Assembly (NCBI GenBank): GCA_030704615.1
Contig: CM060732.1
Span: 31,744,001-31,808,000, forward strand
DNA length: 64,000 nucleotides
Direction of reading: 5' to 3'
From: Takakia lepidozioides
Lineage: Eukaryota > Plantae > Bryophyta
Shown piece by piece: positions 14,101-63,803 of the stretch. Each line of letters begins with the position of its first letter. The stretch's first letter is position 1. The position numbers and the translations under genes are program-made. The notes under the pieces were generated by a model. It saw nothing but the letters and a program-made list of their open reading frames with translations, was not told where the DNA came from and did not search any database.

Positions 14101-14164
14101 GTTCATTTCTCTGCTGCCGCTGTGCGTGTCCATTGTTTCTGGCTCTGCTATATATTAGACTCTA

Positions 14165-25259: not shown

Positions 25260-26010
25260 TGTTACAATATAATGAGTTGCTTCATAAGCTCACTGTAATG
25301 CAGAGAGTAGTATATTTAGAGACACCATGGGAGAGAGATAGAGCAGGTCTATGCATTATGAGTGCTGAGAAGATTAAGCCTTGTGTATTTTTGTTCACCT
25401 TAGTCTCTAAAAGATATTCATATATTTGTAAGAATGGATTTTTCTAGTTCTACCGCCATTATAGGTGATGTGCAATCTCAATAGGTTATGTGCTCACGAT
25501 TCGCCAGAAGTTTGGCTTTGGTAGAAAAGTTAGATCGTTCTAACTATGTAAATTGGAAGGAGATCATAAAGGTGTTGCTCGAGCGTGATGATTTACTTGA
25601 GATTGTCACAAGAGAAGAAAAACAACAGAACTGGAAAAGAGTGGAAGCATAAAGATGCTACAACACGTTTTCACGTCTTCTCTAGAATGTGTCGAAGGAG
25701 AAGTTCCAGTACATTACGAACGCCACAACCGCAAAAGAGGCATGGAATCTATTAGAGAAACGACATGAAGACAAAGACGATGTCAGCATACTAGCAATCT
25801 GTACTCGTCTATTCACCTTCAAGATTAGAAGGAGAGGACGTTAACCTATGTTTGACCGAGCTCAAAAATCTACTTGTTTATTTCAAGTCGGCAAAGATAA
25901 ATGTCTCAGACATGATGATCGATTCTTATTGCTTGTTTGTTTCACAGCCTCCCGCCATCTTTCCATGTGATGGTGACTTCCCTTAACACCCTAGGAAAAA
26001 ACTTGTCTTT
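25260..26010 (+). mobile_element. Ty1/copia relic: short LTR (25260-25483), PBS and degenerate gag
   Basis: TGTTACA...CTCAATA, then GGTTATGTGCTC. Gag motifs EKLDRSNYVNWK...TTAKEAWNLLEKRH...SLPPSF. Confidence 0.75.
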
Positions 26011-28260: not shown

Positions 28261-29305
28261 CGGTGAACTAAGGGTTCCACTCATCCCTCATCCTCACACC
28301 CAGAACCCTAATCACAGACTTAAGGTTGAACGAAGAACACTAGTGTACTTAGTAGATTTGTCAAGAGCAATAGAAGGTAGAACAGAATGCGATGACCCAA
28401 CACTACGGCATCAATCCAAGTGGATCAATGCACTATGTACTATTATGCTTTTCGACAATTTGCTGCAGTGGCTTTGGTGGAAGCCACAATAGCAAACGGT
28501 CTGCAACCTCCTATTGGGCTACACTTTTGCTCAAGAAATAGAGAACATTCACTCGCCACAAAAGTGTTTGCCACAAAAGAAGTGAGACGCTCGATGCCCC
28601 ATGTTGGTGGTCGCACATATATATATTTTTTTTAAAAACTACTACGACCACCCCCATGCTGGTGGTCGCAGATATTAAAAAACAGAAAAATGCTATAACC
28701 ACCCCCTGCTAGTGGTCGCATATATATATATATATATATATAGCGACCATCCCCATGATGGTGGTCGTAGATATTAAAAAATAGAAAAATGTTGCGACCA
28801 CCCCCATGCTGATGGTCGTAGATATTAAAAAACAAAAAAATGTTGCGACCACCCCCCTGATGGTGGTCGCACCTATTACAAATAAAATAAAAATTGTGCG
28901 ACCACTAGTAGCGGTGGTCGCAACTGTTTAAAAAAAGAAAAAAATGCGACCACCCTTGCTGGTGGTCGCATCTATTTAAAAAAAACAAAAATGCTGCGAC
29001 CACCCCTCTGCTGGTGGTCGCAATTATTAAAAAATAAGATAAATTCTGCGACCACCAACATTTAGAGGTCGCACCAATTTAACAATAATTATTTAAAAAT
29101 GACCTCAAATACTGGCGGTTGGAGTAATTTATAAAACAATTTATTCACTTGCCAAGGTGTCGCTTGGAATACAACGTGTCCACCTACGTGACATATTTTT
29201 CATCTAACTCATGTTTTATTGATTTTTCGGCAAAACTTACGTGACGTTGGTCGCGTTAGCGTCAGGTCCGACGTGACGGGACTTGACGTGACGTGTGCAA
29301 CCCTG
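26030..29305 (-). mobile_element. hAT DNA transposon, 3'-truncated
   Basis: 5' terminus CAGGGTTGCAC on the minus strand ending at 29305, ACGTG-rich and palindromic subterminal repeats, then the transposase. Confidence 0.75.
28600..29075. repeat. Array of ~9 hairpins TGCGACCACC-loop-GGTGGTCGCA with ~50-bp period and A-rich spacers
   Basis: Units at ~28643, 28692, 28742, 28793, 28843, 28896, 28944, 28994 and 29047. Confidence 0.9.
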
Positions 29306-41912: not shown

Positions 41913-42067
41913 TAAAATAAGGTAAAGGCACTTAATTCAGACCTAAAATCTTTCACGATGAGTACAAATTAATTTTGAAAATGTCCACCACCTTGACATA
42001 AAAACTTGCGTCGGTTCTAAGTCACCTAACAAAAAAACTTTGAAACCTTATGATTTTTTAATCCACG

Positions 42068-42443
42068 CATTCTTTGCTGCATTGGAATCCACTTTAATTT
42101 GCTAACAAAAATATACAAAAATTTAATCATTCTAATAGTAGTAACTATGCTCAGTGATTGAAATATCACTTATTTTGTTGGCAACAGCAAAAAATTAGAT
42201 TTAACTTCAATCACAAAATCGGATAATGCAAGAAACTATGCTCAATTTTCATGCATTCCTTGCTGCATTGGAATCCACTTTAATTTGATAACAAAAATAT
42301 ACAAAAACTTGACCATTCTAATAGTAGTAACTATGCCCACTGATTAATATATCACTTAATTTGGTACGATCACCTTACCTTTGACAACAGCAAAAAAATT
42401 AGGTTTCACTTCAATCACAAAATCAGAAACTATGCTCAATTTT
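42068..42443. repeat. ~185-bp tandem duplication in ALG1 intron 1
   Basis: GCTGCATTGGAATCCACTTTAATTTG...AGAAACTATGCTCAATTTTC occurs twice. Confidence 0.9.
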
Positions 42444-44319
42444 CGAACGATTGCCATTGTGGAATACCTCATGGGCAAGAGACAGAGCGTGATACTGCAT
42501 ACGAGGACTCATGCGTAAGTCGCCGAGAACAGCCGTTCTCCGCCTTTGACTGGTCCGCTTGCGCTTCCCGAACAACGATCGGATCGAAACGAAAAGCCAC
42601 GATCGAGATCCGCACCCTCCTCCTCCATGGCCCTATGCACGGACAGCTAGGGTTGCAAGAAACCCTATGCAATCAAAGACGGGGAATTGAGCAATAAATG
42701 CTTGGAAGGAAATGTTGCGGTGACAGAAACGAAATACATGAAAATGTGGCATGTGATTACAGTGGAGAATCAAAACAAAAACAAATGAAAAACAGGAGAA
42801 GAACGCAAAGATTTCAAGGTGGTGTGGAATTGGAAAGAAGAGCACCGACTAAAAACCTTGAAGCAGAGTTTCCCTTGCAACGCAGAGACAGACGTTCTCT
42901 AGTCAACAAAGTTGAGGGCCCGTTTCCTGACATGCACGAGGTGGCGGTGCCCCGCTATGAGATCTGCGATTTGCCGGTTCAGTTGGGCATGCCCTGCCGC
43001 CCTGTGATTAATTATCCCTCTATCACGAGAGTACTGTAGCGGCCTGGGCTTGGCACCTCGAAAAGGATCTGGTCCCAACTGCCCGGCTCTAAGAAAATTG
43101 AAGGGCAGCCCGCCCCTTCATGCGTCATAACGATAGTATAAAAAATTAATGGACTTAAATCAACCCTCTTTCCGTGATTTTTTTTCGGAGGGCGAGTTTA
43201 AAATTATATGTCGTCATAAGGCAGAAACTAGAGATTTGGAGAGGAACAATATCAAGAAGTGTTACAAAACCCACGACCTGTCGTCTTTCCTATAATTAGG
43301 AATTGGAAAGTATTCATATATGTATATACATAATTCATGGATCGAGGTAGATATTTTCCATCTAATTTTCCACCGCCAAATGTATTTAGTATCAATGTGC
43401 GTGCCATCAACAGACATCATCTTGTAAGATTTTTTAGTTGCAGAATTTGGAGTAAAATTCATGAACCTTGTTATGAGTTCAAATGTCTTTTTTGTATTAC
43501 CAATAGTCACGTACGGGATGGTTTGGGATTGCACTATTTACATATTATATTAGGATAAGAGAATAACGATAGTATGGTGAATGTAGGGTTGATTAGACTA
43601 AAATGGACGTTACCAGCACAGTTTTAGATGACTGCAATTGATGGTGTCATCAATTGAAATTGAATTAACTCATTAAAACCAGCAATTATATATGTCATTG
43701 GATTCCTAGCTTCAATATGCATCCATAGCAACTCTCCAATCATGAATCCGATAAGAAATGACTCCGCTATGGACTTTTGAACACTGTCATTGTGGACTGT
43801 TACCACAATGAATGGAATTACAATGGACTCAAGTTCTCCTATGTGCCATAGCCCAGCTCCAAATTGTAAATCACCCAGCTATTTGTGTCACTTTGTAGGT
43901 CACTATATATCAATGTCTTACATTTAAAATTTTGACTTCTAGACTACTAGTGCATAGTGACACAAATAAGGTGAACTCTAAATAATGGTTTTCATCTCTT
44001 ACTCCCTTTGTTCCGAAATAAAAAGCACTTTTGATTTCTTCATGTATTTATATCTCTTCATATATTTGTATTTGTATTTATATTTCTTAATATATTTGTA
44101 TTTCTTCTTTTATTTTATTTTTCTTTATTGTTTTTTCTTTTAAAAAAAAGAAACATATGGGAGCGACAGCTCACAAATCAGGCCCCTTAATAGTGAGAGG
44201 TGAAAATAACCTCTTTCACAATAACCCGCGCCATGAGGCATAGGAACGGGACACCACCCAAGAACCGGGGAGAAGAGTATGCCACACCCATTAGTAGGTT
44301 GATTCGACCCCAGAATCGT

Positions 44320-45490
44320 CTGGGTATTTCATTCGAGCAGTTGTAACAATATCTACTGTCTTGAATTGTTGGAGCAGTCCCGTTTTTAAGGTGCTCCATA
44401 GTAAATGTTTTCCTTTTGCAATCTGTCTTCTCTCCCATGTCTGTAACCATGTTGAAGCATTGTCGAGTAGAAAAGATCGTATGAACATTCCGTGGTCCAA
44501 ATCGTTTGATATAAAGGAAATATGATAGATGTACCTCCATTCTTGCTCCACTACCCCTTCCTTTGTGGTGTTTGTCTTCTAAGATTAATGTATACTGGGC
44601 AGTTGCAGGGTTGAGTGGACCAAAAACGACAGACCCCTGCTCCATGAAAGTCCATGACCAAAAAACCAAATTGAGGATACTATCCCAAAATATTATTTTA
44701 ATGATAGATAATGGTATACTGAACATATTTAGTAAAGAGTCCTATCCCAAATATTAAATATATAATTCATTGAATATTTTAGTATATTATTTAGAAAAAT
44801 TATGAAAAACTAAAAATTAGAGTTTACAAAAAAAATTCAAAATGACACCTAGACATTGAAGATTATAGGTTTTAATACTTCTAGAAAAAAAAAATGGCAC
44901 CCAAAATCCAAAAAACAAGATGAGCTATGGACTTTTCAAAAAACGTCTATTTGTTTTTAATATATTAGTCCATATATTATCTATTCAACACTTAAAAATA
45001 TTAACAAAAAAAATCTCTTAAAAAAAACATCTTAATCGAATCATGGGTATTCACTCCCAACTTCAAGAAAGACTAGGCTCTGATACCATTGTAACACCCA
45101 GGATCTACACAAACTAGAATAAAAGTACTTCTCAATTTTTTTCCAAAACAACTCTATGCCTTCTAGGCTTTCATTGCATGTTTATATACCTTTCACAATA
45201 TGATTATTTTAAAGGTTTGACTTGAGAGCCTCAAGTCAAAACTTCATAAAGTCAACCTTCATAGGTTTGACATATTTCCCACAATATGACTTGCTCAAAC
45301 ATTTGACGTACTCTCCATAATATAAATATTTTATAGGTTTGATTTGAGAGCCTCAAGTCAAACCTCCTAGGAACTTTCCTAGTTATTTTGAAAACTTCTA
45401 GGGAACTTTCATCATTCATCTAGAACCTTCTAGATTCTACCATGTCAAGTGTTCAAAACTAGGTTGTTCAGCGTCTATAACTCAGTTACA
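44320..45490 (-). mobile_element. LTR retrotransposon relic: LTR 45090-45490, tRNA-Met PBS, gag fragment 44320-44560
   Basis: TGTAAC...GTTACA termini, TGGTATCAGAGCC on the minus strand (45076-45088), and gag-like FLLDNASTWLQTW...WSTLKTGLLQQF...ARMK. Confidence 0.75.
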
Positions 45491-45749
45491 TTCGTTACTG
45501 GAGCACCAGATCGAGAGGTAACATTCAAACTGACGATGTAAGCATTTTGCACACTATATTGAGGGGCTTTAGATCGCAGGATAATCCACGGGACTAGAAC
45601 AGTAATGCACAAAGCTATAAAAACGAACACGACTATCGTGCAAAAAAGAGCCAGGAGATAATAGTAAGAATCAGAGGACCGACGCCGAGGTCGGCCGTAG
45701 ATAGAGAATGGGGGAAGAGGGGGGTCACAACATGGCCTGGAGTCGCAAA

Positions 45750-47060
45750 TCCCTTGTCAACAAACTGAGGAACAAGATTGCATCCGATGTTCATGCCAGA
45801 AAACCCTTTATCTTTAGTAATTGACACCTTGAGACAAATCTTTGGTGCCTCAATAGTTGCCTGTATAATAGCTGGAACGGGTACCTCCATGATTGTGAAG
45901 ACACAAAATATTACGGGAAGCAACATTGCCAAAGATGATCAACAGTTCTATTTTGTCTTTGACAATTTCGGGTTTGAGAACACGGAGGAGGTCATGGCTT
46001 ATGTGGAGAAGTTTTCAATGTTAAGGATGCGCAGCTTGATTCTGTGTGTGAGGTGTATAAGGGCAGGTGCAGACCTTTGACAAGTTCTATTGAAAAATGC
46101 GCGAGGAAAAATGTCGAAGCGTCGAAAATCCCAAAGACCTTATTCGAACATGCACGCAATCTTGTTTCTAAAGTCTGGTCTAGAAATGGATTTTATGATG
46201 ACCTTCAAGGATCAAATAAATATATTTTTCATGGGTACAGAGGAATATATCAGGTGACACTCAGGCACCTCGCTTCAAAATTGATATTCTACTATAATAT
46301 TATTTCGGTGACCTTTTGGTGGCCTTTCCAGACGTGAAGTCCTTAGCTATTGTCGAATCGTGCTTGGGGAGACTCCACAAGATCCATTCGGAATCCAAAC
46401 TAGCTCGTCTTGAGAATTATTATTTAAAGATAGGCATGTCAGCGGAGGAGGAGCTTCAGTTAAGCATAGCTTTTCCTTCTTTGCAAGCTAAGACCAATGA
46501 GCATCTGGTGATACATGCGCTTTTACAACGTATTGGAAAATCTCACAGGCAAAACCATGGACTTGTTTAATGATCGTGCTGTTATGGGTAATTTAGCTAA
46601 GCCACTCGTGGTCGGGCTGGTAGGGCATGCCCTGGAAGGAATGGAGTTTACTAATTGTATAAGCAGTCACTCAGTGGACGATTTTGGAGGCACAATCAAG
46701 GTGGTGGGTCATGCTCCTCAAGTGGAAACACCTTACGTGCTAAGCAAATCGGACTTTCATAAGCTGAAAAATTGGGGTGATACACGAAAGTAAACGTCCG
46801 CCAATGTTCCACACTGAAATTGACCACTCCTTTGGTCCGGATTTTTTTTGTGTGATGTAGGGGAAAAAAGATTGTTGGTTCTTGTTCAGGTGAAAATAGG
46901 AATTCATTTCAAGAAAGGCCAAGCTTGGGACAGTCTCAACCCCCAAAATATGTTTTTACACGGGAGAAAAGAAGTTGCAGAAGAGGAAAAGGAAGGACCA
47001 CTCCTTGCGTGCACCTGTAGAAGCACACACAAAGCGTGTGTTGTATGGGGTCCTTAATGT
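45750..47060 (+). pseudogene. Crinkler/CR-effector-like NTPase + restriction-endonuclease-fold protein, frameshifted
   Basis: PLSLVIDTLR...IIAGTGTSM...DNFGFEN...KGRCR...AIVESCLGR...NEHLVIHAL...FGPDFF...LLVLVQVK...AWDSLNP, across about five frames. Confidence 0.6.
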
Positions 47061-48426: not shown

Positions 48427-51400
48427 TCAGGTGTTGTGTTGGTTGCATCGTTCCGGGTCACCAGACTTCTCCTCAATTTTCTTATTTGTCTTGGAATTGC
48501 TTAGTATTTTCAACTGCCATCATGAGACAAAATATGTTAATGTGAGAATGGAATGTCAAAATTTGCATCAAGAAATTGTCACATGCAGGACTCAAATCCA
48601 ATTTACAAATATCAGCCATGCCCACCCCACTCCATGTGTTTGGACTTCCTTAGACATAATTTAAAGTTCTTTTCTTTCATTATTTCTCTTTCAATATCTG
48701 TACCAAAATGAAGGAAGCAGGGGTCAGCGTCACTCTCTCTCTCTCACTCTCTCGTGGGGGTGCTTAAGGAGTGTATGTCAGCATGCTCCAAAACAGCCAA
48801 TGTGGCTGTTCGGGGTGAGTTTGGCATTCCGTCCTTAAGCTCCCGACGAGATGAATTCAAGGTCAGATGGTGGGGTCAGCTGCAACATATGCCCAACACC
48901 AGATATCCTAAGTTAATCGACTCTATATCTTGGAAACAGGACCGCCCTGTCAAACAGGCTAAGTCCTGGCAGAAGAGAGTAGAAGAGATTCTCAAGGACC
49001 TGGACCTGGATCCGGAAGTCTTGACCCTGCTGGATAAATCTGACTTAGAGGCTGTAGTGTCCTCAGCCATGTCTGTTGCCATGAGATTGTCTGATGAAAA
49101 TGAAGTTAGGCAGAAAACTTCCCTGAACTTGTTTCCAGTCAGTGACATGGGGGAGGACATCTTGGATGACCTCAAGGGTCTACCCACTCTCGGCACTAGA
49201 CTGAAATTTAAACTCAGGGCAGGAAGCCTACCTTTGAACAGCAAACAGAAGCAGAGAGGAAAGGGAGAGTGCAATTGCCCGCTGTGTGGGCAATCTGAAG
49301 ACAGTATTCACTTTCTGATACACTGTCCGGGGTTCTCTCACCAAAGAGACGCTCTCTTCAATTCTATCAAGGGAATTGTGCCTGTACCCCTGTTTAACAA
49401 CTTTGAAAGTCTCGAGGCTGAGCCAAAAGCCCAGGCCCTCCTGAGGCCTAGTTTTTGGGCAAATCACACACAGCAGATTGATACTTGGGTGAAGGGATTT
49501 CTAGAGGATATCTGGAGAACCCGGATTAATTCTATATATGATGGTAAGTCACACTACCAACGTCAGCCCCTGACAGAGGTAGGTTCTGTCCCTTTTGTTC
49601 CCGCTCAAACTGGGCACGTTGTCAATGGCCACAAGGCTACGGCAAACAACGTCTTAAGAGTACAATCTCTCCTACCACCCCTCCCAATTCTGTTCTGTTA
49701 ATCAGAAAGGAAGGAAAAATGCCAGATTATAGGAAAAGCCCAAACCTTCGCCACAAAAAAGCCATCCATGTTATGCACATGGGGGTAGAACCGTCTTGTG
49801 TTCCTTAGTGTGGGATGGAAGTGATGCTCACGGAAGTTGGTGTATCTGGTAAAACAGCGACAACAAACAAGAAGTCAAGGTTAGTGTCCAGTTTGCCTAT
49901 GCAAATGTAGATCAATACTGCCAAAGTGAAACAGAGATATGAAAGGGAATCTCCTCAATAAACCACACATGCTGCTGTCTTGTAGCATAATCACTGTTCA
50001 CAGTTCTGACCTGAGGCAGAAGAAAGCGATAAAAAATTACCTCCACCGAGGCACAGCAGGCTATGGGACAGAGAGCAAAATCATCACAGGAGCTTATCTT
50101 ATAACCATGAATATAAGTAGACATACACAACAGCGGTGAAAAGTAACAGTGTGTTATCTAGTTACAAAGTAACAGAGATGAAAAGGGGTCAAACATACCC
50201 TTCTCGACCAAAGTCCAAACCGCAAGGTACAATTTTCACATCGCGTTTGCGTAGTGCGTAGTCCACAACTGCCTCATTCTGCCAACACAGTACTCACACC
50301 TTATTCCTTCGGTGTCTTCTACCAGGCTGAAGAGTTGTGGAAGGTACTGATGTCATGTAGGTCTCTGGGAGTGAATCCACTCTTTTGCTTGCATCACTAA
50401 ACGTCTTGTTAACACTTGTTAACACTTGTGACCAACTTAACTCAATCAGATACCATCACCTTATGGTTATGAGAGGTATGACAGTTCAGTCCCCTACCTA
50501 ATGCATCTCCTCCACACAAGTCCAATCACCCCAATCACTTTGTAGCCCATTTCCTGTGTTATTAAGCTATCATCAGGCTTTCTGTCTCTTCACACCATTA
50601 TGTTGTCCTTGACCATGCGAGATATAGGTGCACACCTCACCAGAATGTAAGCATATATGGCACTGTTATTTCTTCCGCAAAGCAGGTATTAGAATTACCT
50701 CAGCGACCATAACAGAGCAAGTGGAGTAGACAAGAAACCCTCCTGTCTTTGATGATGCATCCACCATGTCTATGGCTGCTAATATTAGCTCCTGCCGGAA
50801 ATACCAAATAACAGCAGTCAACACAGGCTCTGACACACCATTGAAACACATTGAATTAAACACCCACAACTGTTCCAAGATCAGCCTCGGACAATACAAG
50901 GACTCAGAAGGAACTGGAATGGTGAAATAACCCACCCAGGGAAGGGAGCACCCTGCTGAGGTTGGTTGCTTTTGACTCACAAAATGGATAACTTAGGAAG
51001 AAAATGTCCAACTAACAAATGGGACACAGACAAAAGCACCACCTTTTGTAGGGAAGAGCACCGCTGAATGTCCTCAACATCCTTTGTTACCTTCACTGAT
51101 GGGTCCTTACCAATAACCTGCAAGAAACCAATCATTTGAGATTTGAGACTGGGTTGTGGTCCACACATTACTACTTGCGAGAAGATGCACTACATACGTG
51201 TCTATGAAAAGGTGAAAGACTGACTTTAAAGAGCACTGTCATTGAGGACACCCCTGGTAAAATTTGACACTGCTTCAGATAAGTACAGGTGTACAATCCT
51301 AATTTGCGAGTACCACCTACTCAAAAGCACATCAAATTTGAGCTCATCATCATGGTCTTCCCTTGACTGCTATCTACGGTCCTCAGCTTAGCCTTGGTAG

Positions 51401-54400
51401 AAATGGATACAGCAGATGTGGAACTGTCACCCACCCAATATATCTCCATGGAACTACAGTGCACACTCCTGAATACCACCCATCCAATATAACACAGTTC
51501 TCTGCACTGCAGAAAAGTAATCATCTGATGTGTAACCAGTTACACTGAAACTGTTAGCAAATAAATAAAACCATCTCCTAACCACAACATAACAACTAGG
51601 ATATAAATTAGCCAAAATAAAACAAGAAGCAGGCACTTACACCAGTTCCACTGCATGGTGCATCTAACAGCACTCGATCAGCTGTGTTTGAGCCCAGGAT
51701 TTTCGGTAGCTGCAGGTGCAGACTCAAGCAGATCAGTGGTCCAGCATGCAAGGAGAGGACATGAAACCACATGACTGACATTAGAGACGAATGGAAGTAT
51801 ATGATCTCACGAAAATGCACATCCCACAATGTAACGACTATTGATGCATTCCGCAAAGCAATAACAACAGGAGCTGAAAGAGACATAGTCAGTAGCACCT
51901 CACCTCGCGGCCGTCATAATTGCAAATGATAGTGTTGGTCACGCCCATTCGATGAATGTTGGCTGACAATGACTTTATCCTTGACTCCTTGAGCTCATTG
52001 GCAAATAATACCCCTGCCACATTTCCCCACATGCACAACCTGAGATGCTGAACCACTTTTAAGTATAAGATACAGCAATTCAAGCCATGCACAGGGATAG
52101 TTCAAGCTTGGTTGAGATCACTGATACCTAAAGACTTCTACTATCTAGGTAGAAACCTGAAAGTGCAGTCACTACAGGCTATAGACTTCCTCTGTACCTA
52201 CAGTGCCATCAGAAACCCCACACCTGCTATTCTGGTGTCCAAAATACAAACTAAATGACCGATTTCAATTGACAACCTACCTGTATTCTTCATAAGTGCT
52301 GCAATGTAGGTTGTTTTCCCACCTGGCGCAGCTCTGTAAAATTCCAGGTCCAAGAGGCCAGACAAGATATGGCAATCAGATTACTTCCTTTATGACAGCA
52401 TATTGCAAAAACTACACCTAAAGAGCAAGAGGGGAAGAATAGACAAGACAACGGATAAGACAAGTACTGAAGGGGCAGAGAAGAGAAATCAGTATGAAGT
52501 GTCCAGTCTCTAGCCTCAAGGCAGGAGAACAAAAGGTGCGAATAGGGTACATACGCCATATCCACAACACGTTCTCTCTCTTGAGGTGCCAGAGCCATGA
52601 CTGGTAAAAAGGATGACCCACTTTGCAGCTGCAGACCCAACCAACGTCGATTAGGCAACTTCGGTGAGACATTATCAATAACCACGAATTCACAGTGAAA
52701 GGCATGATTAAAACAAGTAGAACAAAACTCATCATGACCTAACCAGTGACAGTGGCATGCAAGGGTAGGCTCCGTCTCATAAATTCAGAGCCAGCCCACC
52801 TGAATAAGACTCTTCTGCAGAATCCATGTGGGACATTATCCCAACTACAATCATTGCATCGGGTTCTGATACCAGCGGTGTTTCAAAAAGTACCTACTGT
52901 AACCAGCCAGCTCGATACATCTACTCACAGAGAAGAAAAGAAGATGATAAAGAAAAGAAGGTTACCATGTAGTGACCAGCCATGTATTCTGGAGTTGCAC
53001 CCACAGGCACTTGAGAATCATACACAACCAGGCCCACCTGCCAGTACAAGCAATGACATCTAAACATCATATGTAGGAAGAGAATTTGTTTCACTTTTCT
53101 TTTCAAAATGAAATAAGATTTGGTTTCGGTTCTGATGTTTCAGTAAGGCTACAGAAACATTACAAGCACTTTGTACAGTTGACTCGCACAGACATTACTA
53201 GAACTCACTGTGGCAATTGTCTACACTTACAACTGTGGCACCATCTGATTTTTTTGATATACTGGATGGAAGTTGTACAGGCACGTTCCAAGAAAACTTC
53301 ATGCCTCACGATCTTTCTGTCTTTCTGGACTACTATATATACATTTGTTTAAAGAACTTGTGATGATCTTAAGATCAAACTTTAGTAGTTGAGTCAATGC
53401 CAGCGCAAACATAAATGATACATCAGAAAAGGTAATATGCCGCAAGGGAAAAATCCTGCTGCATGCCACTGTCATGGTCAACTCGAGTGACATACCACTT
53501 CATAATACCTTAGTCCATTTCCCTAGAGGGTCCAAATTCACCCCCCTGTTAATCAAGGCTTGAGCCAAATCTTTCCTCCGAGACTGCATAATAACACCCA
53601 AAATGAATCATTAGCTCTGTACGATGGGCTTCCTTGGATTGGGAGAGCATGGAAGGGCACAAAATAGCAGAAGATTTGCTTGAAAAATGAGAGTACAACA
53701 AATGGGAGTTTTTCTGACTGCAGGTTTTTGCCAGTCATAGGCATACACCTATTTCAATTTATGATTAGGTCAATTATTGCCAGCAGCAGTTTCTTTCTTG
53801 ACATACCAAACAAGCAAATCCACAATCATCACAAGACAGGTGAAATAATGACCTTCAAGGTATTGGTCCTCAAAGAGATTGGCCGAGGCTTCTCATTTGC
53901 TTCCAAAAACTCAACTACTTCAGCAACAGGGAACATCTGCTCCCAACCAAAAGCCCTCTCTTCAGCTACTAGATATGCAAACAACAAACAAAGTGCTAAC
54001 TTGAGCCAAACGCTATTTGGCTTTACCCACCCAGCGCAAGCATATTGTTTGAGATAAAAGAAAGCAGACAACCCCAAGAAAATATCAAGGTGCGCACTGC
54101 ATGGGGCACCTTCAAACAAACAAAACCTGGCAATCACCCCATACACCAATTGACAAGAGTTTAATAAGGTGGACTTCTGCCCCAAGCAAGCATAGATTAT
54201 GGTGTCCCTTTAGCCCGAAAGAGACTACTGCCTTCCATTTGGAAGGTGGACACCTTCTAATGGCTGGAACCAGGGCAAGATGCCTCTCCAAACCTCCCCA
54301 GACTCGAAAGTACGCACACATCAGGTGACAGGTTGACCAGTGACCCCCTTTTACAGCTGGGTATAATGGTTACCCATCTAACATACACCTATATGGGACA

Positions 54401-56124
54401 CAAGAGCAAATGGTTAATGAATGTAAGACCTGAATGCCAAGACTGAATTTCTAACCAATTCAAAAGCATTCAAAATTCAGATTAGGACAGAAAATGACCT
54501 GAAGAAACATATTGACCAGGAAATCATTGTAGCCATAATAAGAAGCCAGGTCGGTAGCCAACTGCTTCACATAATCAGTTCTGGCAACTCCTTCAGGCCT
54601 GAGCGCCTTGAAATTTGAAAGCACCCGTACAACTGCCATGTGTAGACCATTTAAGATTCATGCTCACTTTCCCATCCTTGCATATACGTATGTGCAAGTT
54701 GACCTATTAAGGCACTAAAACAATATACCACTTACTAAGAACTGGTCTTCCCACAACACTACTGCACTGGAGCCCCCAGTTGCCAAAAACAGACATTCAG
54801 TATCGCTACTTACTGTCCTTGATTCGTTGTAGAATGCTGCGAAGATCTGGTGGGCCCTTACCCTCCTCCTCCAGCTCCTGGAAACACCAACAAGACACCA
54901 TCCTTCATGATATCCACTCCTTCATTACATTCATGGTCCAAATTCTTCATGCATGAAACTTCTATGCGCCAAATCATCCCATTGTTTCCTGACGATACAC
55001 TTTGCAGAACAGAAAACTACACAGGTTCCACTTCTGCACCAGATATCTCTATGAAATGTGTAACCATCTTAACCTTTCAGGCATCTTTACAATTAGGTTT
55101 TGAAATACAACCTTATCATGCAGATATCCTGAGAAATAAATCTTTCCAACACATCAAACTAGAAAGGTCAAATCTAATGCTACGAAAGTAAACTTGCAAA
55201 CGCAGATACTTTGTTCCAAAAGTGAACCCTACAGACCTCTGCTGTGGGTAGACGGAAATCATCAGAGTCACCCTGAATGTTCAACTGCAATTCATCCTCT
55301 TCTGCATCTTTGGCCTCACGGGCTTTCTCGGAATCTAACCTTCGCGCCTTTTTCTCCACCTCCAATTCACCATCACTCTCATCTGCAGACACCGTGAATT
55401 GATGTCACCGCGCAATGAATTGCAATGACAAACATGTCTATCCCATTGATCCACTGTGGTTTGGAGATGATTGCTCATTGTGTGTTAAAACAGAAAAACT
55501 GGAGGCCACATTTCCAGCTAATCCGTCTGTCTTGCCAACAGCAACCACGGTTCAACAGGCCCCTGGTAAGTGGTCCGTTGCTTAAAATATGACATAAAGG
55601 AGGTCTTTGGTTAGTTACGTTTTCTAACCTTCGGAAATGGAGAGCGCTCCTGAGATGTCGGAGTCATCTTCCTCGTCGCCGTCATTCAATTTGGCCTTCA
55701 GCCACTTCCTGTTATCATCGCTAAAACCCTTCCTGCTTTTCTTCTCTCCCTCTTGTTCCACCTTCATCTCGGGAACTTGTCTCCCTTTAACTTTCTCCCC
55801 ACCTTTGAGACCACTGATACCCCCCTTAAGTTCCTCACTGACGTCGCTTTCTTCCCCTTCTTCTTCCTCGTCATCACTAAAACCCTTCCTCTTCAATAGT
55901 TTTGCTACTTTTTTATCGCGCCCTTCCTTCTTCTTCACCTCCATAGCTGCACGAAGGGACTTCAAGCTCCCGGTAACTGTAGTCATCGGTTTAATTTCGG
56001 GAGGGGCCGAAAGTGTCACGGCTGTGACCTCCGTACTAGTTGTCTTCTTGGCCTTCTTGAGAGTGGCACGACTCGGCAGTGTGGGAGGAGCCTGCCCCAC
56101 TTTCCTTTTCTTAGTTCGCGCCAT
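48427..56124 (-). CDS. NOP2: 25S rRNA cytosine-C5 methyltransferase NOP2 (NOL1/NOP2/Sun family), about 16 exons
   Basis: In-frame GT-AG exons: [75 protein letters not shown], and last exon LKILSNSK...* (48513-48427). Confidence 0.95.
48754..49650 (+). mobile_element. 5'-truncated LINE (RTE-X/CR1-like ORF2 C-terminus) inserted antisense in the last NOP2 intron next to a (CT)n tract
   Basis: [10 protein letters not shown]...KLRAGSLPL...[18 protein letters not shown] (CCHC knuckle), uninterrupted frame. Confidence 0.8.
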
Positions 56125-56356
56125 AGCTCGATCGCAACGCAACATGTGTGCGGAAACACAGCTATGGTGCGAGAGAGAAGAGAGGTGGTCCTGGAACCCT
56201 ATGTTCATCCATCACTCACGACTCTAACCCTAAGTTCATCCATGCCTTACAGGAACCTATGAAGTTTGTGACTGTGAAGTGCTCAGCAGAGCCCTTAGCG
56301 GTGTGGAGGGCTTTGGCTTGAATCACAGTTGAGGGAGGCTTTCGAATTGAGGATTG

Positions 56357-57669
56357 ATGGCGAAGAAGGGAGAGCGAGTGGTGGGGATGTCAGCCCCGCA
56401 GTTTTCCTGCACAGACGATGTCGCACTCAATGTCGAGAAAGCAGAGAGGTGGGTCTCTTCGTGTCGGCGTTTCGTCATATTCGTTTATCTTTTCCACTCT
56501 AACTCTTTCCCTCACAATGTAGCGATGTGGGTGCTTCTTACACATGCCATCTCAGTAGTATATTACTGCGCTCTGTGATTTTATCTTTTGCTAACTCCTA
56601 TTGTCCTAAGGATTTGGTGGAAATTGAAGAATAGAACTTGTTAGAGCTTAGTTGCCTTCACACCAGCTCGCTTGCTTCACGTAGTGCATCGCAGGAAGAA
56701 CATTGTGGAAGATCTAGTAACGTTGTAACAAAAGCCAGTCATTGTGTCTTTTGGTTAAGCAAGTTCTGAATCTGCATCTTGTTGACACGGGGTTTAAGCC
56801 AAATGCTAGTAACCACCGAAACCTCCTTTAATTAGTTTCTCATGCGACATCGATGTTGTTGGCATCTTTCTGTCAAAGACACTTGGAGTTTGGCAACATA
56901 TCTCAAGCTCATTGGGAAGATATATGCTGTGGCATGATACTGTTACTGAATAGTCAAGAAGATAGTGTGCTTATGGGGTTGAAGAAGACTTCGTAAAATT
57001 AATCAGTTTGATTGTGGGATCTTTTGGCAGGATTGTGAGAGACACCCATGCAAAAGGTGCCAACGTTGTGCTCATTCAGGTAGAACATCTGAAGCCATTG
57101 CTTATCTATGTCCAACTAACTTTGTGGGTTCTTGTAAGCATTCCAAGTTCAGCTATAAAGTAGAATTGCATACTAGGAGGAACAGTGTCTTCTTCATGAG
57201 TTGAAGCTCTTACCTTAGCAAAGCTTTCAGCTTAGAACTCTCTCTCTTTTGTTTGGTCTTATTCTTGTTCTTCAGCTTCTGATTCTCCTCCCCCTGACCC
57301 TTGTAGACCTGGTTTGTAGTTGTTGTTGACGACAGGCATTGGGTATTGTCCCATAAGCTCTTGGCTTTTCGTGGATGGCAACATGTCTCTTTGTTTCCCT
57401 CTCTCCTTCTTTCTATCAGTCTGTTCCTTTCTAGTCAATTTCGAGTCTATGCTTTGCAATCTCATGCCTTAGATATGTAGAACACTCATGTTATATTGTG
57501 GGGTTTATTTGACACACCACAGGAGCTTTTTGAGGGTTCTTACTTCTGCCAGGTCCAGAGGGAAGATTCCTTTGCACACGGCCATCCTCAGGAAGACCAC
57601 CCCACAACAATGGTCTCTTCTATGCTCACTGGCAGTTGTCACAGAGTAGTCCAAGGTCACCAGACTTGA
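56357..57669 (+). pseudogene. N-carbamoylputrescine amidase (nitrilase-like NLP1/CPA), first three exons only (56357-56448, 57031-57079, 57523-~57612)
   Basis: QFSCTDDVALNVEKAER | IVRDTHAKGANVVLIQ | ELFEGSYFCQVQRED...HPT. Several conserved positions are substituted and no downstream exons were found. Confidence 0.88.
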
Positions 57670-59501
57670 GAAATAAATGCACAATGAAGGCCCTTTGTAT
57701 TGACTGTGGATTGAACCCTCCTTGGGTGAGAGCGGCACTACCTGCTGTGATACAACGCTCAGGTGATGGGGTCAATGAGAACTCTTCATGCTCTTGTGAG
57801 CATTTGACGACTCTATGTAAGGCAGGACGATTGAAAGAGGCAGTGCACATTTTGAACAAACATGGCACTTTGCCAGACTCCAAGACCTACATCTGTCTCT
57901 TGAAGGAGTGCATCAAAATTGAAAACCTTGAAATGGGAAACCAGGTGCATACCCACATCATCCGAAGTGGATTGAAGACAAACATCTTCCTGCTAAACAC
58001 CCTTGTCAACATGTACGCCAAGTGTGGGAGCATGGTGGACGCATATCTAGTGTTTGACAACATGCCTGAGCGAGATGTGTTTACATGGACCATGATGATG
58101 GCAGGATACGTCAAGCATGGGTGTTGTTGGGACGCTTTCAAGATGTACAAGCAGATGATGTCGGAAGGGTCCACACCCAACAGCGTCACCTTCATTTGCA
58201 TTCTCAAGGCTTGTGCCAATCTAGGAGCACTGGAACAGGGGAAAGAGGTGCATGCTGACATCATCAAATCTGGAATTGTATCAGATACTAAGTTGGAGAA
58301 TACCCTTCTTAACATGTATGCCAAATGTGGGAGCATGAAGGATGCTCAACAAGTGTTTAACTCTATGACTAAACGAACTTTGGTCTCATGGAACGCCATG
58401 ATTGGAGGATATGCTCAGCACGGGTATGGTAGGGAGGCATTCGAGATGTATGAGCAAATGAAACAAGAAAGTGTGACGCCTGACAGGGTCACATTCATTT
58501 GCATTCTCAATGCATGCTTGACCCAGTCAGCCCAGGAAAGAGGCAAAGAGGTTCATGATGACATCATCAAGGCTAAACTACCACGGGATGTCATTTTGGA
58601 CACAGCACTTGTTGACATGTATGCCAAATGTGGGAGTATGGTAGATGCACGTCAAGTATTTGACAATATGGCTAAGCGGGATAGGGTCTGCTGGAATGCG
58701 ATCATTGCAGGATATTGTCAACATAGGTGTGGTAAGGAGGCTTTTGAAATGTATGAGCAAATGATACAGGAAGGGGTGATACCCAACAAGGTTACGTTCA
58801 CTTGCGCTCTCAATGCATGTGCCAGTTTGGCAGCCCTGGAAGAAGGCAAAGAGGTCCATGCTGACATTATCGAAGCTGGAACTACCCTTGATATTATTTT
58901 GGAAACTGCCCTTGTTGACATGTATGCCAAATGTGGGAACATGAATTATGCGCATCAGGTGTTCGACAAGATGCATCAACGAAACATTGTCTCATGGAGT
59001 GTGATGATCACAGGATATGCTCAGCATGGGTGTGGTAGGGAGGCCCTGCAACTGTTTGAACAAATGCAACAGGAAGGCTTGAAGCCAAATGGTATCACCT
59101 TTATAGGTGTTATTTCCGCATGTAGCCATGTGGGCCTAGTGGATGAAGGCTGTCACTACTTTGAATCAATGAGTAGAGAGCATGGCCTTACTCCGACAAT
59201 GGGGCATTTTGGTTGCTTGGTGGACCTTCTTGGGCGTGCAGGGCGATTGGATGAGGCAGAGGGCTTCATTGCCAGAATGCCAATTGAACCAGATGCTGTG
59301 GTTTGGGGAGCCCTGCTTGGTGCCTGCAAACTCCATGGCAATCTTGAGCTTGCAGAACATGCGGTGGAAGGCCTTCTCAAGTGTGATCCACAGCACACTG
59401 CACCTTATGTTCTGCTATCGAACATAGCCAGTGGGATGATACTCAGAGGTGAAGAAAGGGCATTCCCCACACGATCGCTATACCAGATGTCATCTCCTTA
59501 G
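57636..59501 (+). CDS. PLS-class pentatricopeptide repeat protein with a truncated E domain (first ATG 57684)
   Basis: Intronless ORF with repeated P-L-S triplets (LVDMYAKCG..., WNAMIGGY..., VTFICILNAC), then VDLLGRAG, WGALLGAC and YVLLSNI, after which similarity is lost. Confidence 0.95.
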   Translation: MSQSSPRSPDLRNKCTMKALCIDCGLNPPWVRAALPAVIQRSGDGVNENSSCSCEHLTTLCKAGRLKEAVHILNKHGTLPDSKTYICLLKECIKIENLEMGNQVHTHIIRSGLKTNIFLLNTLVNMYAKCGSMVDAYLVFDNMPERDVFTWTMMMAGYVKHGCCWDAFKMYKQMMSEGSTPNSVTFICILKACANLGALEQGKEVHADIIKSGIVSDTKLENTLLNMYAKCGSMKDAQQVFNSMTKRTLVSWNAMIGGYAQHGYGREAFEMYEQMKQESVTPDRVTFICILNACLTQSAQERGKEVHDDIIKAKLPRDVILDTALVDMYAKCGSMVDARQVFDNMAKRDRVCWNAIIAGYCQHRCGKEAFEMYEQMIQEGVIPNKVTFTCALNACASLAALEEGKEVHADIIEAGTTLDIILETALVDMYAKCGNMNYAHQVFDKMHQRNIVSWSVMITGYAQHGCGREALQLFEQMQQEGLKPNGITFIGVISACSHVGLVDEGCHYFESMSREHGLTPTMGHFGCLVDLLGRAGRLDEAEGFIARMPIEPDAVVWGALLGACKLHGNLELAEHAVEGLLKCDPQHTAPYVLLSNIASGMILRGEERAFPTRSLYQMSSP

Positions 59502-60351
59502 TCTTAGTAGGAAAAGAACTTACCCAGATATTCGGCAACATGAGTACATCAGGTTAGATACCTGCAGTATTTATACTTACCCATCAGTGAGACATTCGCC
59601 TTGGCCAGCATACAGTCCATGGATGCATCCAGGGCAACTATCATTCCCCGCGATGCCCCCATCTTCACAGGATGCAGATCTTCAGATCAATTCTCTTCAC
59701 ATTATCTTAATCCAATGCACAGAGGAGGTGTAAGTACAACGATGTCTTCCCAGTGAGAGTGAGGATGGGATGGGTTGGGATGGGTCAACATGAGTTGCAA
59801 GATGAATATGATGGAGGCGATTACTTCAGCCCTGTAATTACTTCAGGCGTGACGATTTCTCCCGATGACGCAAAGAAAGTGTCCCAAGGGGTGTGCATGT
59901 GCTCTCAGCCCAAAAACCAGACTTGACACTGGATATTCTTTCCCCTCCACACTCTCATGCAATAGAAAGAGCGTGTTAGATACATAAAATTCATTCATCT
60001 GGCCACACGATCATTTGGCTGGTATTAGATTTTCGCACCTTGTGGATGCACATTATCTTGTACAACAATGACATAAACCAAGATGTCTATCCTATCCGAG
60101 TATCACTGAGTCTTCCCATATGTTGCAGATGCCCTCTTCTTGATGCAAAAACTTGAATATTTCTTGATGCCTCTGCAATACGGTTTCCTTGCTTTCACTG
60201 CTGTTGTTCGAATCATACGTGACTTGGGCAGCTTACAGGAAGTGCAAAACTGTCTGTCGCATCCAATGACACATTGCTTTGCCGCAAACCTGCTTGCTTG
60301 TAAATGTAAGGAGAAAGTATGACTGTTCTTTCATGCCAGTTGCTTCATTCG

Positions 60352-60676
60352 TCAATAATCCCCATGAGAACCCTTGCCATCTTGGAAGTTGTGATGGTGG
60401 CTGGCATCTCTGGCCGTTGCTTTTGGGCTGATCAGCATGTTCCCGGGATGTCTATCCACGTCATGATCCCAAAGAGAGGTTTCCTTCTGCTTCTCTTCCA
60501 CATCATGCAATACAACTTGCATGTCAGGCACATACCTGCCGTCCTTCATCAGCCCAGACAATATCAGCAAGGATTTTTTCTCAATTGTGAATGTCCTCCA
60601 CAATGAATGAATCCACCTGTTTGTCCGCCTCGTGCAGCTGCACTCTGCCTCCTTCCTAATACTTCTCTCCTGCACG
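60352..60676 (-). pseudogene. Degenerate E+/DYW domain of a PPR editing factor
   Basis: QERSIRKEAECS...LMKDGRYVPDMQVVLHDVEEKQKETSL...ARDASHHHNFQDGKGSHGDY*. The HxE and CxxC zinc motifs are deleted. Confidence 0.85.
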
Positions 60677-60687
60677 TCGCTGGCCTT

Positions 60688-61300
60688 GGACAGGGTAAAA
60701 TTTCCTGGCTTCAGCATGGAGGAGCATGGCGCCAAGTTGTGAGTGCCACCTTCCTGTCTTGTTGCCTTCATTGTCAAGTTGTCAACCTTCAGTGACTTGG
60801 AAGGGCCTGCCAAACTGTTGGGGTCATGAGCACCTCCGTCTATCCAATGCGGCCTATGTAGACACTGGTCAAAGTAACCCAATATTGTTCACAAGGCCCC
60901 CTCTTGGCACTCTTTTCAATTGGGCCTTTCATCCCGATGCTGCATTCAAGAAAGTCTGAGGGCTATGGCCAGTCGGACTGTTTCAGAACGGTCTGCTTGT
61001 TTTACTGCCTCTTCATCCCTTGTTGATTTCATTCTTCTTCCCTGCAGCCGCACGGTAGACTTTCACTGAGGTGTTAGTTAATTTAATGTTCTGACTTTCA
61101 ACAGCTGCTGCCGATAGATGGACGGACATCGTTCGCCACGGCGAAGTTACACTTGATTATTCACTAAGTAGAGTGGCTCCCATGGAGATTCGCTTCTCAG
61201 AGCTCTGTCGTTTGAGATGAAAAGGTTGCAAGCGAGGCAGTCGTTTCTGACAACATGGGATCGACACTCTATACGATCACCCCACACAGATCGGAGGTCT
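60688..61300 (+). pseudogene. Truncated duplicate of the BTB gene 5' region
   Basis: Direct homology to 20161-20850, including EMKRLQARQSFLTTWDR; ends at the start of the BTB domain. Confidence 0.8.
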
Positions 61301-62457
61301 AGACACGAGCATTATGGGCGGCCCACTGTAGTGGTACTTACCTCGACATAGACATTTTGTCTATAGATCCAGATTTCCTCTAGAAAGCCACCCCAACAGT
61401 AGGCCCAGGGTTTAGCTCAGCATTTGGATTTGCCATTTGCAGGGATGCTTATGACGGTCCTGAACAGGTTGATCTTGCACCCAGGACTTTGTAACAGAAA
61501 ATGGATTTTGTCTTCAGGTCAATCTCCTCTGAGCTCTGTGCATCTGTTCATTGTACAAAGGTGTAAACAGGGTGTAAACTTAAACGATGGGGTACTGTCA
61601 ACCTGCGAATTGTATGTGCAGGTTATTGAATAGATGAAGCAGATATGAAGCAGGAATGACAATGTGAGAGTGATCTCTAAAACTTCCATCAGAGATTGGA
61701 AAGTAAGATAATATCCAGTAAGATCGAACTGTCAACCAGCCCTTCCAACTGATGCGTTCCAACTGGTCATACTTTAAGGCACTTTCGGTATACTTGAAAC
61801 ACTGTCTTAGGTCAAGATGGTCAAGCTTAGTTCTTGAATAAAAGTTAAGTGGACATGCAAAAAAGTAATCAAAGAGAGGTCTGCCTCGTGATTTCTCATA
61901 GAGATATAACAAGAAAGGTAGCAAGCAAGAAAGACACCTTATAGAGTCTGCAGGAACACCCAAGATAAAATTACACCTGAAGAAAGCACAAAGAGCCATA
62001 GTGCGATGGAGAGAAGCAATTCCTGATTACTGTTCACTCATAATTATAAACTTGAGACAGACAGTCAGAACTGACAGAGCATCAACTGACAGGTCAAAAT
62101 TGATCCATTTCAACCCTTGCTCACAGTTTCCTTACCAGCTTCTTCCAAATCAAGGTCACCCGGGAGTAGAAAGGCTCCCTAAGAACCCAGTTGGCACACT
62201 CAAGAGTAAAGCAAAGAAGCTTCTGCCCAGTCTTTGAAGGATGCATCACTGACTGAAAATTTTCATTTTCTGCTCAATAATATTATGCATGTGTACAGTG
62301 ATGGGGTACATACAAAGAACAATGCCAACACACTAGGGGTTGAGCTCACTCAGGCAAATGAAGTTAACTGACTGAAATTATACACACTGGATCAACTAAG
62401 ATATGGCGGCTGTAATATTATTTATTGTCAACCCAAGGGAGTGCCTAAATCATGCTA

Positions 62458-63803
62458 TCAGCATTGCAGATGCTGGTAGACCTGACACTTGATCACTTTC
62501 TGGTGAACCTGGAACCCCGGCATGGTCATAAACTGCACTTTCGGCATCGTGCATTTTTGACATTGAATTGTTGCATCAGGAGTGACAGTCTCCACGTAGA
62601 GAGGGTTGAGTTCCATACCTCTTCCCACCCTCAGGATTGTAGCCACAGGGTTGAAAGAGAATGCCAGGCGATGTAGCAACCATACACACTTAGCGGCATC
62701 TAGGAATGCTCCAGTGAACACTTGTCGCTCTGCTGCTTCCTTGAATACAATGTTCCAAGGGAATAGAAACCACATTCCTCGCATTTTCCTCTCACAGAAG
62801 GCCAAAAATTTCGGTTCAAAACTGACATGATGAGAATTGGCTGCATCAATGGCATCCACTAGTTTCATGCGTTGGAACTCCTCAAACCGTTTAGTGCATC
62901 GCCTGCTAGGATCAATGATCAGGGTCAGCCCTGTCTCATCAAAGCTGTCATTCTCAAAGCAATGGTACATGGCCTGCCGACAATCCACACACCTGTTAGA
63001 AAATATTCAGACTGTCGTTGTTGTGGATTTGGAACACTGGACAAACAGGAGTTCAAACGTCCATAAAAGTGGAAGCAGAAATGCAGTAATCCAAGCCAGG
63101 TATGTGGCAATAGCCTTCTTATCCCAGACTTCCAACAACCCAACCACTTTTTACCCCAATGGTGGCACTGGGTTCCATTGTCAACAAATTATGTAAGTGT
63201 ACAAGTAGTACTCCAGAATCTCAAGCCCGCAATAAACCCTGAGCGATCAAACTTTGGGAGGTCAGATCTTCAAGAAATGTCTTCTAGATAGAGTGGAACT
63301 GTAATGTGCCAGTTTGTATCTACCTTGTTAATGTTGGACTCCAGTGCAAATGCACTATGCTCCTTTTTACCAAAGCTTGCATCAGGGTCAATTGCTGCAA
63401 GCGTCCTCCAGACTGAGTACCCAGAGATTTCCATCTGATTCATAAATACTTTGCAGAAGTAACGGACAGCAACCCGAGCCCGGATTAATGCCATCTCAAA
63501 CAGAAGGATTCTTGCTGACATTCTTGTTTCCTGTGTCCCTGGACAGGGGCCGTCTGAAGTCTCCTCTGCATCCCCAGAGCCCTCCGAAAATATTTCCTGT
63601 GTTGCAATCTTTGGCTTTGCTGCTTCTGGTCTTGTGCATGTAGGCTGAGAGTCATCGGTACTTTCCAATAAACCATTGCTGGAAGAGGAGGAACCTGAGG
63701 TTTCAGAGGATGTCTCATTTTGCAAAAGGTCACCAGGAGTGCTAGTCTTTGAGTGTGGGTTGCCTGCACGGGTAGCAGGCTTCTTACAATCTGTCATCTG
63801 CAC
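62458..63803 (-). CDS. IRK-interacting / GIL1-like protein, 3' exons (63324-~63800 and 62458-62973); 5' part extends toward or beyond the window end
   Basis: FALESNINK | AMYHCFENDSF...FLAFCERKM...FLDAAKCVWLLHRLAFSF...VQFMTMPGFQV...IKCQVY, with a GT-AG intron at 62974-63323. Confidence 0.85.

Follow-up and report, generated by a model that had tools for sequence, protein, structure and literature searches.

A rearranged PPR gene lies towards one end of the window, which is the whole 64-kb stretch of Takakia lepidozioides DNA that was analyzed. PPR proteins are a family of RNA-binding proteins, and about two thousand PPR genes are present in this moss. The reading frame of the gene is open from 57636, has its first ATG at 57684, and stops at 59499-59501. 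It contains a PLS tract on the plus strand (57879-59294), identified with Pfam PPR and a motif table, that is arranged as L1-S1-(P1-L1-S1)x3-P2-L2-S2. The 14 tandem motifs are of full and regular length (35/35/31) and contain no indel. The code residues (positions 5 and last) of the P and S motifs before L2 are ND, TN, NT, ND, TD, NN, TN, and SN, seven of the eight being canonical. E1 and the first helix of E2 follow (59295-59426, plus strand). E1 is complete, with 34 residues (59295-59396). E2 is incomplete, as only its first helix is in frame and the Pfam E_motif match covers positions 1-32 of 63. PPR homology ends after YVLLSNI, and QWDDTQR-stop-RK follows out of frame at 59429-59458, as the sequence-only reading had noted; the half-matched Pfam motif and a frameshift-aware alignment agree with it. 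In that alignment, a 13-bp deletion relative to the consensus precedes the remainder of E2, which is out of frame and has an in-frame stop (59427-59458). The deletion lies outside the inversion described below and is a separate event that removes the second half of E2. A novel 24-residue tail (59427-59501, plus strand) runs across the left inversion join to the stop, with M to T (59437) in two samples and R to a stop (59472) in one. The PLS tract had also been described as an unbroken frame of about 600 codons. The frame is indeed open and without frameshift, but it is the last exon only and the native N-terminus is missing.

The missing C-terminal domains were found on the opposite strand. 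From 60672 to 60352, the minus strand reads QERSIRKEAECS...YVPD...LHDVEE...RDA...GDY-stop, a continuation that had been proposed from these motifs. Pfam DYW_deaminase matches it weakly (E 2.8e-4) and 65 tblastn matches of homologues fall in this region. The end of E2 and the E+ motif (60541-60674, minus strand) contain at least three frameshifting indels. The PG box is changed to A-E. Together with the start of the gating domain, it is mutated, on the opposite strand, and not in frame with the PPR gene. In the DYW remnant (60352-60540, minus strand) the HSE and the CxxC zinc ligands are deleted and the final W is a stop. Overall, the frameshift-aware alignment gave 6-7 frameshifts in 356 bp. 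The features of a DYW-type editing factor, namely an in-frame E+/DYW with PG box, HxE, CxxC, and a terminal DYW, are thus lost here. The remnant is dead; it has decayed, as had been claimed, and did so neutrally. Its indels look like ordinary neutral decay because similar small indels are equally common in the BTB flank outside the inversion.

The inverted segment, on the minus strand, spans approximately 59460-60674 (about 1215 bp), as placed by self-BLAST and an in-silico flip. Microhomology of 3-4 bp (GCA) is found at the joins, with GCA at 59460-59462 and TGCA at 60671-60674. Sequence comparison of the joins revealed no long inverted repeat or element ends at either, and recombination between such repeats is therefore ruled out. 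One DNA unitig of 1771 bp spans both joins with 0 differences from the window, and RNA contigs from two other samples additionally span the left join. Unitigs across the joins rule out an assembly artefact. Reads were aligned at an 80% likeness threshold to catch an un-inverted paralogue; paralogues dominated the joint table and masked splice joints of the locus.

A paralogous BTB pseudogene region (19301-21288, plus strand) provides the ancestral orientation. Its identity is given by an exon (21133-21288) that matches Pfam BTB (E 2e-6). As had been suggested, one block of its 5' region matches in reverse and another directly. In a self-BLAST, 19301-19599 matched 59801-59507 reversed (75%, E 2e-48) and 20144-20823 matched 60671-61290 directly (76%, E 6e-143). 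The locus thus contains a BTB gene fragment whose 5' non-coding region is now reversed at 59507-59801 (minus strand) and continues at 60675-61290 (plus strand), where it is truncated in the first coding exon. When the segment is flipped, both blocks fall into a single collinear chain that is interrupted, immediately inside the right join, by a gap of about 500 bp, and E2-E+-DYW is restored together with the BTB-paralogue match. The unitig across the joins, the restored domain order, and this collinearity together bear out the proposal that an inversion detached E+/DYW from the PPR gene.

The two parts of the former gene have fared differently. There are no frameshifts in the 1782 bp of the PLS exon, compared with the 6-7 in the remnant (P 2e-5 to 4e-6). 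Conserved residues are changed at 12-15 of about 40 positions in the remnant and at 6 of 56 in P2-E2a (Fisher P 0.005-0.018). Measured against 78 intact DYW proteins, the conservation of P2-E2a is at the 14th percentile and that of the remnant is lower than in any of them. With no frameshift and conservation within the range of intact proteins, the statistics show purifying selection on the PLS-E1 tract for much of the time after DYW loss; the original suggestion was that the truncated protein is possibly still under selection. The internal omega of the tract is 0.22-0.36, a value that combines the periods preceding and following DYW loss. Of the 27 listed private changes at near-fixed family sites, which are a biased sample, 19 are non-synonymous. 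Protein searches found no orthologue or close paralogue (the best match is 54% overall and 68% in the C-terminal part) and no candidate relative of the remnant. The exact full-length truncated protein is absent from the searched protein collection.

The 5' end of the gene has been replaced. The native upstream exons, which would hold the transit peptide and half of the PDF module, are absent, and exons 1-3 of a duplicated, degenerate 5' fragment of a gene for N-carbamoylputrescine amidase (CPA) are found in their place on the plus strand, in a head-to-head arrangement with a NOP2-like gene. Searches with spliced models were run by individual exon. Exon 1 (56357-56448) has an ATG and a GT donor at 56449, and matches residues 8-34 of PDB 5h8i/5h8k with phmmer (E 0.0016). 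Exon 2 (57031-57079) ends in phase 0 and is recognized by a weak tblastn match with bacterial CPA and by AG/GT ends, being too short for a separate library search. Exon 3 (57523-57612) matches residues 51-80 of 5h8i (E 9e-7) and has private changes relative to the parent copy, A to V (57554) and F to S (57569). The remaining CPA exons were found nowhere else in the window. The CPA relatives obtained from metagenomes are bacterial, in a set biased by the search pattern. Contigs of the parent CPA end at 57606 and those of the PPR family begin at about 57638, which would place the fusion point at approximately 57606-57638. The stretch at 57613-57644 (plus strand), with an AG acceptor at 57643-57644 in phase 0, is probably the tail of the PPR gene's own intron. 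The exon 3 frame runs into this tail and stops at a TGA (57667-57669), 15 nt before the PPR ATG. The CPA exons look younger than the remnant because they have no frameshift in 231 bp (P 0.03 against the remnant).

Beyond the acceptor lies the second half of an OSB-type PDF module (57645-57740, plus strand). It is eroded, with H to N at 57672 and W to C at 57698 relative to the family alleles, and contains the first in-frame ATG. An HMM of the first half of the module finds nothing in the window. Homologues from Diphasiastrum and Sphagnum carry a matching motif, and the arrangement resembles that of the PDF-PLS-DYW family of seedless plants, in which the second half of the PDF module is directly before the PLS tract. 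Unlike that family, the gene lacks the first half and all upstream exons, and its motif has substitutions of the H and the W. Descent from the PDF-PLS-DYW family is supported. The first 40 residues from ATG 57684 include 3 basic and 4 acidic ones.

A search for transcripts, which the sequence-only reading had proposed, was positive. RNA-type contigs from two runs cover the coding exon with 0-3 differences, and introns and flanks are almost or wholly uncovered. A probable 3' untranslated region of the truncated transcript (59502-60004, putative plus strand) is indicated by RNA-type contigs 59241-60004 and 59220-59774. An A-rich element precedes 60004 by about 15-20 nt. No splicing is seen at the CPA/PPR junction in the assembled RNA, which is out of frame with CPA. 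The gene is still transcribed, probably from the CPA region.

The favored reading, with a probability of roughly 0.6, is that a former editor was long kept as a non-catalytic RNA binder and was later decapitated. It would have begun as a PDF-PLS-E1-E2-DYW gene for organellar C-to-U editing with the BTB 5' region downstream. A 1.2-kb inversion, presumably by double-strand break repair at the microhomology, and the E2 deletion, in either order, removed the deaminase. The detached domain then decayed as described above. During much of this period, purifying selection acted on the PLS-E1 part. By analogy with CRR21, DOT4, and PpPPR_9/31/43, its protein most likely served as a sequence-specific RNA binder in splicing or stabilization. 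Probably later, the promoter and the transit-peptide and first PDF exons would have been lost through the fusion to the CPA fragment, a fusion that is itself observed. Its present function is doubtful: the gene today is most likely either a pseudogene, young and still transcribed, or the source of a poorly translated, untargeted protein.

Some other readings were weighed. A living chimera, still under selection, is rather unlikely. In it, a PLS-E1 protein that has no normal transit peptide would be made either from the promoter and exons of CPA or by re-initiation at ATG 57684, and would act as an RNA binder in the nucleus or cytosol or be targeted through a makeshift N-terminus. The frame of CPA exons 1-3 is open and their splice sites are intact, and the phases of the exon 2 end and the PPR acceptor match, so that an mRNA skipping exon 3 would stay in frame. 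At 57554, a private C to T also creates a GT donor in phase 0, giving a candidate intron of 92 nt, and ATG 57684 has an A at -3. RNA contig depth is about one third of the parent CPA's, contig depth being a poor measure. Several private changes suggest that the CPA copy has existed for some time, and the PLS exon has nonetheless stayed intact; if the fusion is as old as the CPA duplication, the PPR frame would still be selected now. Against this, the X5 RNA contig 57600-57934 reads through the acceptor without splicing, in X6 the candidate intron is present with the window's alleles, and this intron has 53% GC and a weak donor. A promoter common to the NOP2-like gene could explain transcription without selection. 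The narrower version, a still-selected, sequence-specific PLS binder in the cytosol or nucleus driven by the CPA promoter next to NOP2, without transit peptide and deaminase, appears improbable. If such a CPA-fused, untargeted protein were made and selected, natural nucleo-cytosolic PLS proteins would arise from discarded editors.

Somewhat less probable still is a neutral pseudogene since the rearrangement, with the remnant's deletions stemming from one complex repair event or the PLS tract being refreshed by gene conversion from paralogues. Every coding indel lies within about 330 bp of a join, radical private changes are present in the PLS tract, the family offers thousands of conversion templates, and the substitution difference alone was modest in the first alignment (Fisher P 0.23). 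However, numerous substitutions are also scattered over invariant residues of the remnant, the flank beyond the inversion is equally rich in indels, and long paralogous pieces are only 80-90% alike among the matches listed, so no recent conversion donor is visible. The proposed conversion from DYW to E type, with a deaminase recruited in trans, is very unlikely. Canonical code residues and the intact E1 would suit it, and angiosperm E and E+ proteins are known to work in this way (PMC11897456). However, E2 was cut by a separate deletion and has no second helix, the PG box is gone, E2 and the PG box complete the pocket in CRR4-DYW1, and the transit-peptide exons are lost. Trans DYW donors are described in angiosperms only (PMC11897456, PMC9459714); in Physcomitrium, editing is by DYW-type proteins only and most accessory factors are absent (PMC9459714). 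The locus provides no demonstration of trans-DYW editing in a moss. Derivation of the remnant from a different, oppositely oriented gene, or an assembly error, is largely refuted and hardly credible. The similarity correlation across homologues was uninformative about lineage (rho 0.06). After the flip the halves meet to within one codon of the consensus (R-K followed by Q-E-R) in the frameshift-aware alignment, the BTB paralogue independently yields identical joins, and unitigs of three samples carry the layout.

The favored history, of an editor kept as an RNA binder and then decapitated, has precedents. Truncated CRR21 of Brassicaceae has a coding part under negative selection and diverging sequence beyond the truncation (Hayes et al., 2012, PMC3441922). 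It is likewise a C-terminally truncated PLS editing factor with its kept part selected; the moss locus differs in that the cut involves an inversion and lies in E2, and the 5' exons are also lost. In DOT4, for example in Poaceae, the DYW domain is degenerate or deleted and an RNA-binding role was proposed (PMC6424221). There too, a transcribed PPR array keeps canonical code residues while DYW degenerates, but in DOT4 the targeting peptide is retained and the former target is known. Physcomitrium PpPPR_9 and PpPPR_31 (PLS-type) and PpPPR_43 (deviant DYW) act in intron splicing (PMC9459714). These are moss PLS proteins without an active deaminase, and they suggest how the present protein likely worked as long as it was targeted. 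They have been tested and are targeted to organelles; the N-terminal exons of the Takakia gene are missing. In angiosperms, PPR-E and PPR-E+ factors work with a DYW in trans, as in CRR4-DYW1, CLB19/SLO2-DYW2, and PPR-E with PCW1 or MEF8 (PMC11897456). They share a PLS tract and E1 without their own DYW, but at the moss locus E2 is incomplete, there is no PG box, and no donors or helpers are known in mosses. The locus is thus a clear example of a known degradation route for such genes and not a new editing mechanism. With both pieces side by side, base-pair joins, and a built-in neutral clock, it is a tidy example of the origin of a DYW-less PLS gene in a genome whose editing family is very large.

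The window is plant nuclear DNA and contains introns. One ORF, at 57636-59501 (+), encodes the PPR tract L1-S1-(P1-L1-S1)x3-P2-L2-S2-E1 followed by the first helix of E2. There is a frameshift past YVLLSNI, and the remainder of E2 is legible out of frame up to 59458. The expected continuation of the protein was found on the minus strand, from 60672 to a stop at 60352. An independent marker pointed the same way: when the window was compared with itself, a BTB pseudogene region identified by Pfam (19301-20823) matched 59507-59801 in reverse and 60671-61290 directly. A scripted flip of 59460-60674 made E2, E+ and DYW contiguous, about one codon short at the join. The same flip turned the BTB match into a single collinear chain that is interrupted, immediately inside the right join, by a gap of about 500 bp; the 36 bp separating this gap from the join match weakly (P 0.03). 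The segment 59460-60674 is inverted, and the broken PPR frame, the opposite-strand DYW and the BTB collinearity described in the sequence-only reading were all recovered. The joins have GCA in common (TGCA with one mismatch), and no long inverted repeat was found at them. This fits end-joining at microhomology as the probable origin of the inversion, which detached the E+/DYW part. Takakia lepidozioides has 2016 PPR genes, 750 of them DYW members (PMC13386178). At one DYW position the contig depths add up to 78311, versus about 63 for single-copy DNA, a rough sign of more than a thousand related copies in the genome.

The arrangement was also found in sequencing data. A unitig of 1771 bp (59241-61011) covers both joins with zero differences in each of two DNA runs from one sample, which may be the assembled one; unitigs are independent of scaffolding. 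The left join is also present in contigs 59241-60004 (2 differences) and 59220-59774 (3 differences), from two runs of other samples and studies. Thus, the layout is common to three samples. These two runs behave like RNA, as the parent CPA contig begins at an exon boundary and depth is zero at 56800-56986, 60727-61287, and 61662-62400. Since such contigs reach 60004, the truncated PPR gene is transcribed up to about that position, although the contigs carry no information on transcript strand or level. Transcription at the left join may instead be antisense, from the flipped BTB 5' region, but the contigs cross the splice donor of that region unspliced.

The detached E+/DYW remnant (356 bp) is dead. 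Compared with a profile built from 78 intact DYW homologues, it has 6-7 frameshifting indels; the first listed event comes from an offset artefact, and the alignment is ambiguous in its middle portion. About 120 bp are gone, HSE and CxxC among them, 12-15 of about 40 conserved residues are altered, and the final W is a stop. The PLS exon (1782 bp) has an intact frame with zero indels. For every indel event to land in the remnant, the probability is 2e-5 to 4e-6. From P2 to E2a, 50/56 conserved residues are kept (14th percentile of intact proteins). The PLS triplets fall at the 21st-36th percentile with a strict threshold and the 4th-16th with a loose one, and 7/8 P/S code pairs are canonical. 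Substitutions alone separate remnant and PLS on a strict alignment (P 0.005-0.018) but not on the first alignment (P 0.23). Small indels are likewise frequent in the BTB flank beyond the inversion. Taken together, the indel contrast, conservation, code pairs, and BTB-flank indels argue that selection protected the PLS-E1 frame through much of the remnant's decay. The evidence concerns that period and says nothing of present protection. Among the private changes listed at near-fixed family sites, an incomplete sample biased towards invariant sites, 19/27 are non-synonymous, some of them radical.

It had been proposed that the locus records a DYW-to-E conversion with DYW activity supplied in trans. 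Angiosperm E and E+ proteins recruit DYW1, DYW2, PCW1, or MEF8, and in CRR4-DYW1 the pocket is completed by E2 with the PG box (PMC11897456). Here, a 13-bp deletion at 59427 takes away the second helix of E2. It lies outside the inversion, which alone would have left most of E2. The substitute tail of 24 residues is unconstrained, as it has a stop in one sample and M>T in two. In Physcomitrium, editing is by DYW-type proteins only, and the majority of accessory factors are lacking (PMC9459714). Conversion to the E class is not supported on these grounds. Ends in or soon after E2 are common among homologues; of about 225 fetched, 57 terminate no more than 80 residues from the LLSNI motif, some possibly as annotation artefacts.

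The roughly 600-codon open frame stands as described, but it is the last exon only and not a whole PPR gene. Beginning at the acceptor 57644|57645, it first encodes the second half of an OSB-type PDF module, as in Diphasiastrum and Sphagnum homologues, which have a median of 67 residues ahead of this half. The H and W of the second half are altered relative to the family, and the first half was not found anywhere in the 64-kb window. Searching exons individually showed that exons 1-3 of an N-carbamoylputrescine amidase (CPA) gene are fused directly upstream (56357-57612, +). Depth indicates that these exons occur twice in the genome; here they carry private changes at conserved residues. Exon 3 reads on into the tail of the PPR intron, and its frame closes with a stop at 57667-57669, which lies 15 nt before the first ATG of the PPR part. 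On paper, two splice routes would be in frame, from exon 2 to 57645 and from a new GT at 57553 to 57645, the latter an in-frame donor created in exon 3 by a private C>T at 57554. The RNA contigs seen at the junction are unspliced.

Since the CPA exons have zero frameshifts in 231 bp (P 0.03), the DYW domain was probably lost earlier than the CPA fusion. The former editor would have served for a long phase as a non-editing RNA binder. Possible analogues are Poaceae DOT4 (PMC6424221), PpPPR_9/31/43, and truncated CRR21, in which the coding part is under negative selection and the region past the cut diverges (PMC3441922). A recent deletion as the source of the fusion would make the locus a young transcribed pseudogene. 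Were the fusion as old as the CPA duplication, many frameshifts would be expected by now in a neutral PLS exon, and selection would still be acting on a chimeric or re-initiated protein. A detargeted PLS protein is conceivable, given that mistargeted moss DYW editors can reportedly work outside organelles (PMC9508816), a precedent that is no evidence for this locus. Retention of a PPR array with loss of DYW is already published; the present locus adds a well-resolved further case of it rather than a novel system.

The CPA fragment and a multi-exon NOP2-like rRNA methyltransferase gene (about 50000-56208, -) stand head-to-head. The ORF of the latter starts no more than about 150-230 bp away, and a shared promoter is possible. 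The NOP2-like gene appears complete, its identity judged by eye from translations. Within it or just past its 3' end is a 329-codon open stretch like the C-terminal part of LINE ORF2 (48712-49701, +; by eye). The BTB/POZ gene fragment (19301-21300, +; Pfam BTB on 21133-21288) breaks off at about 21290, and the BTB part at 61100-61290 has 3-5 genome copies by depth and is without RNA cover. Also identified by eye were a hAT-like transposase split among three frameshifted ORF pieces (25983-27709, -), the final exon of a gene resembling xyloglucan endotransglucosylase (16553-17026, +), and an open stretch like an NHL/LEA_2-type membrane protein (45480-45756, -). An IRKI/GIL1-family gene is present at 62458-63803 (-; Pfam PF24994 on 62461-62988). 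Self-comparison revealed two pairs of inverted repeats that may be MITE-like or of another kind (822-1043 versus 1870-1634, and 24345-24636 versus 44933-44641), and tandem duplications at 28597-29088, 14120-14719, 7653-8195, and 42064-42444. The stretch 28600-28853 is also partly self-complementary.
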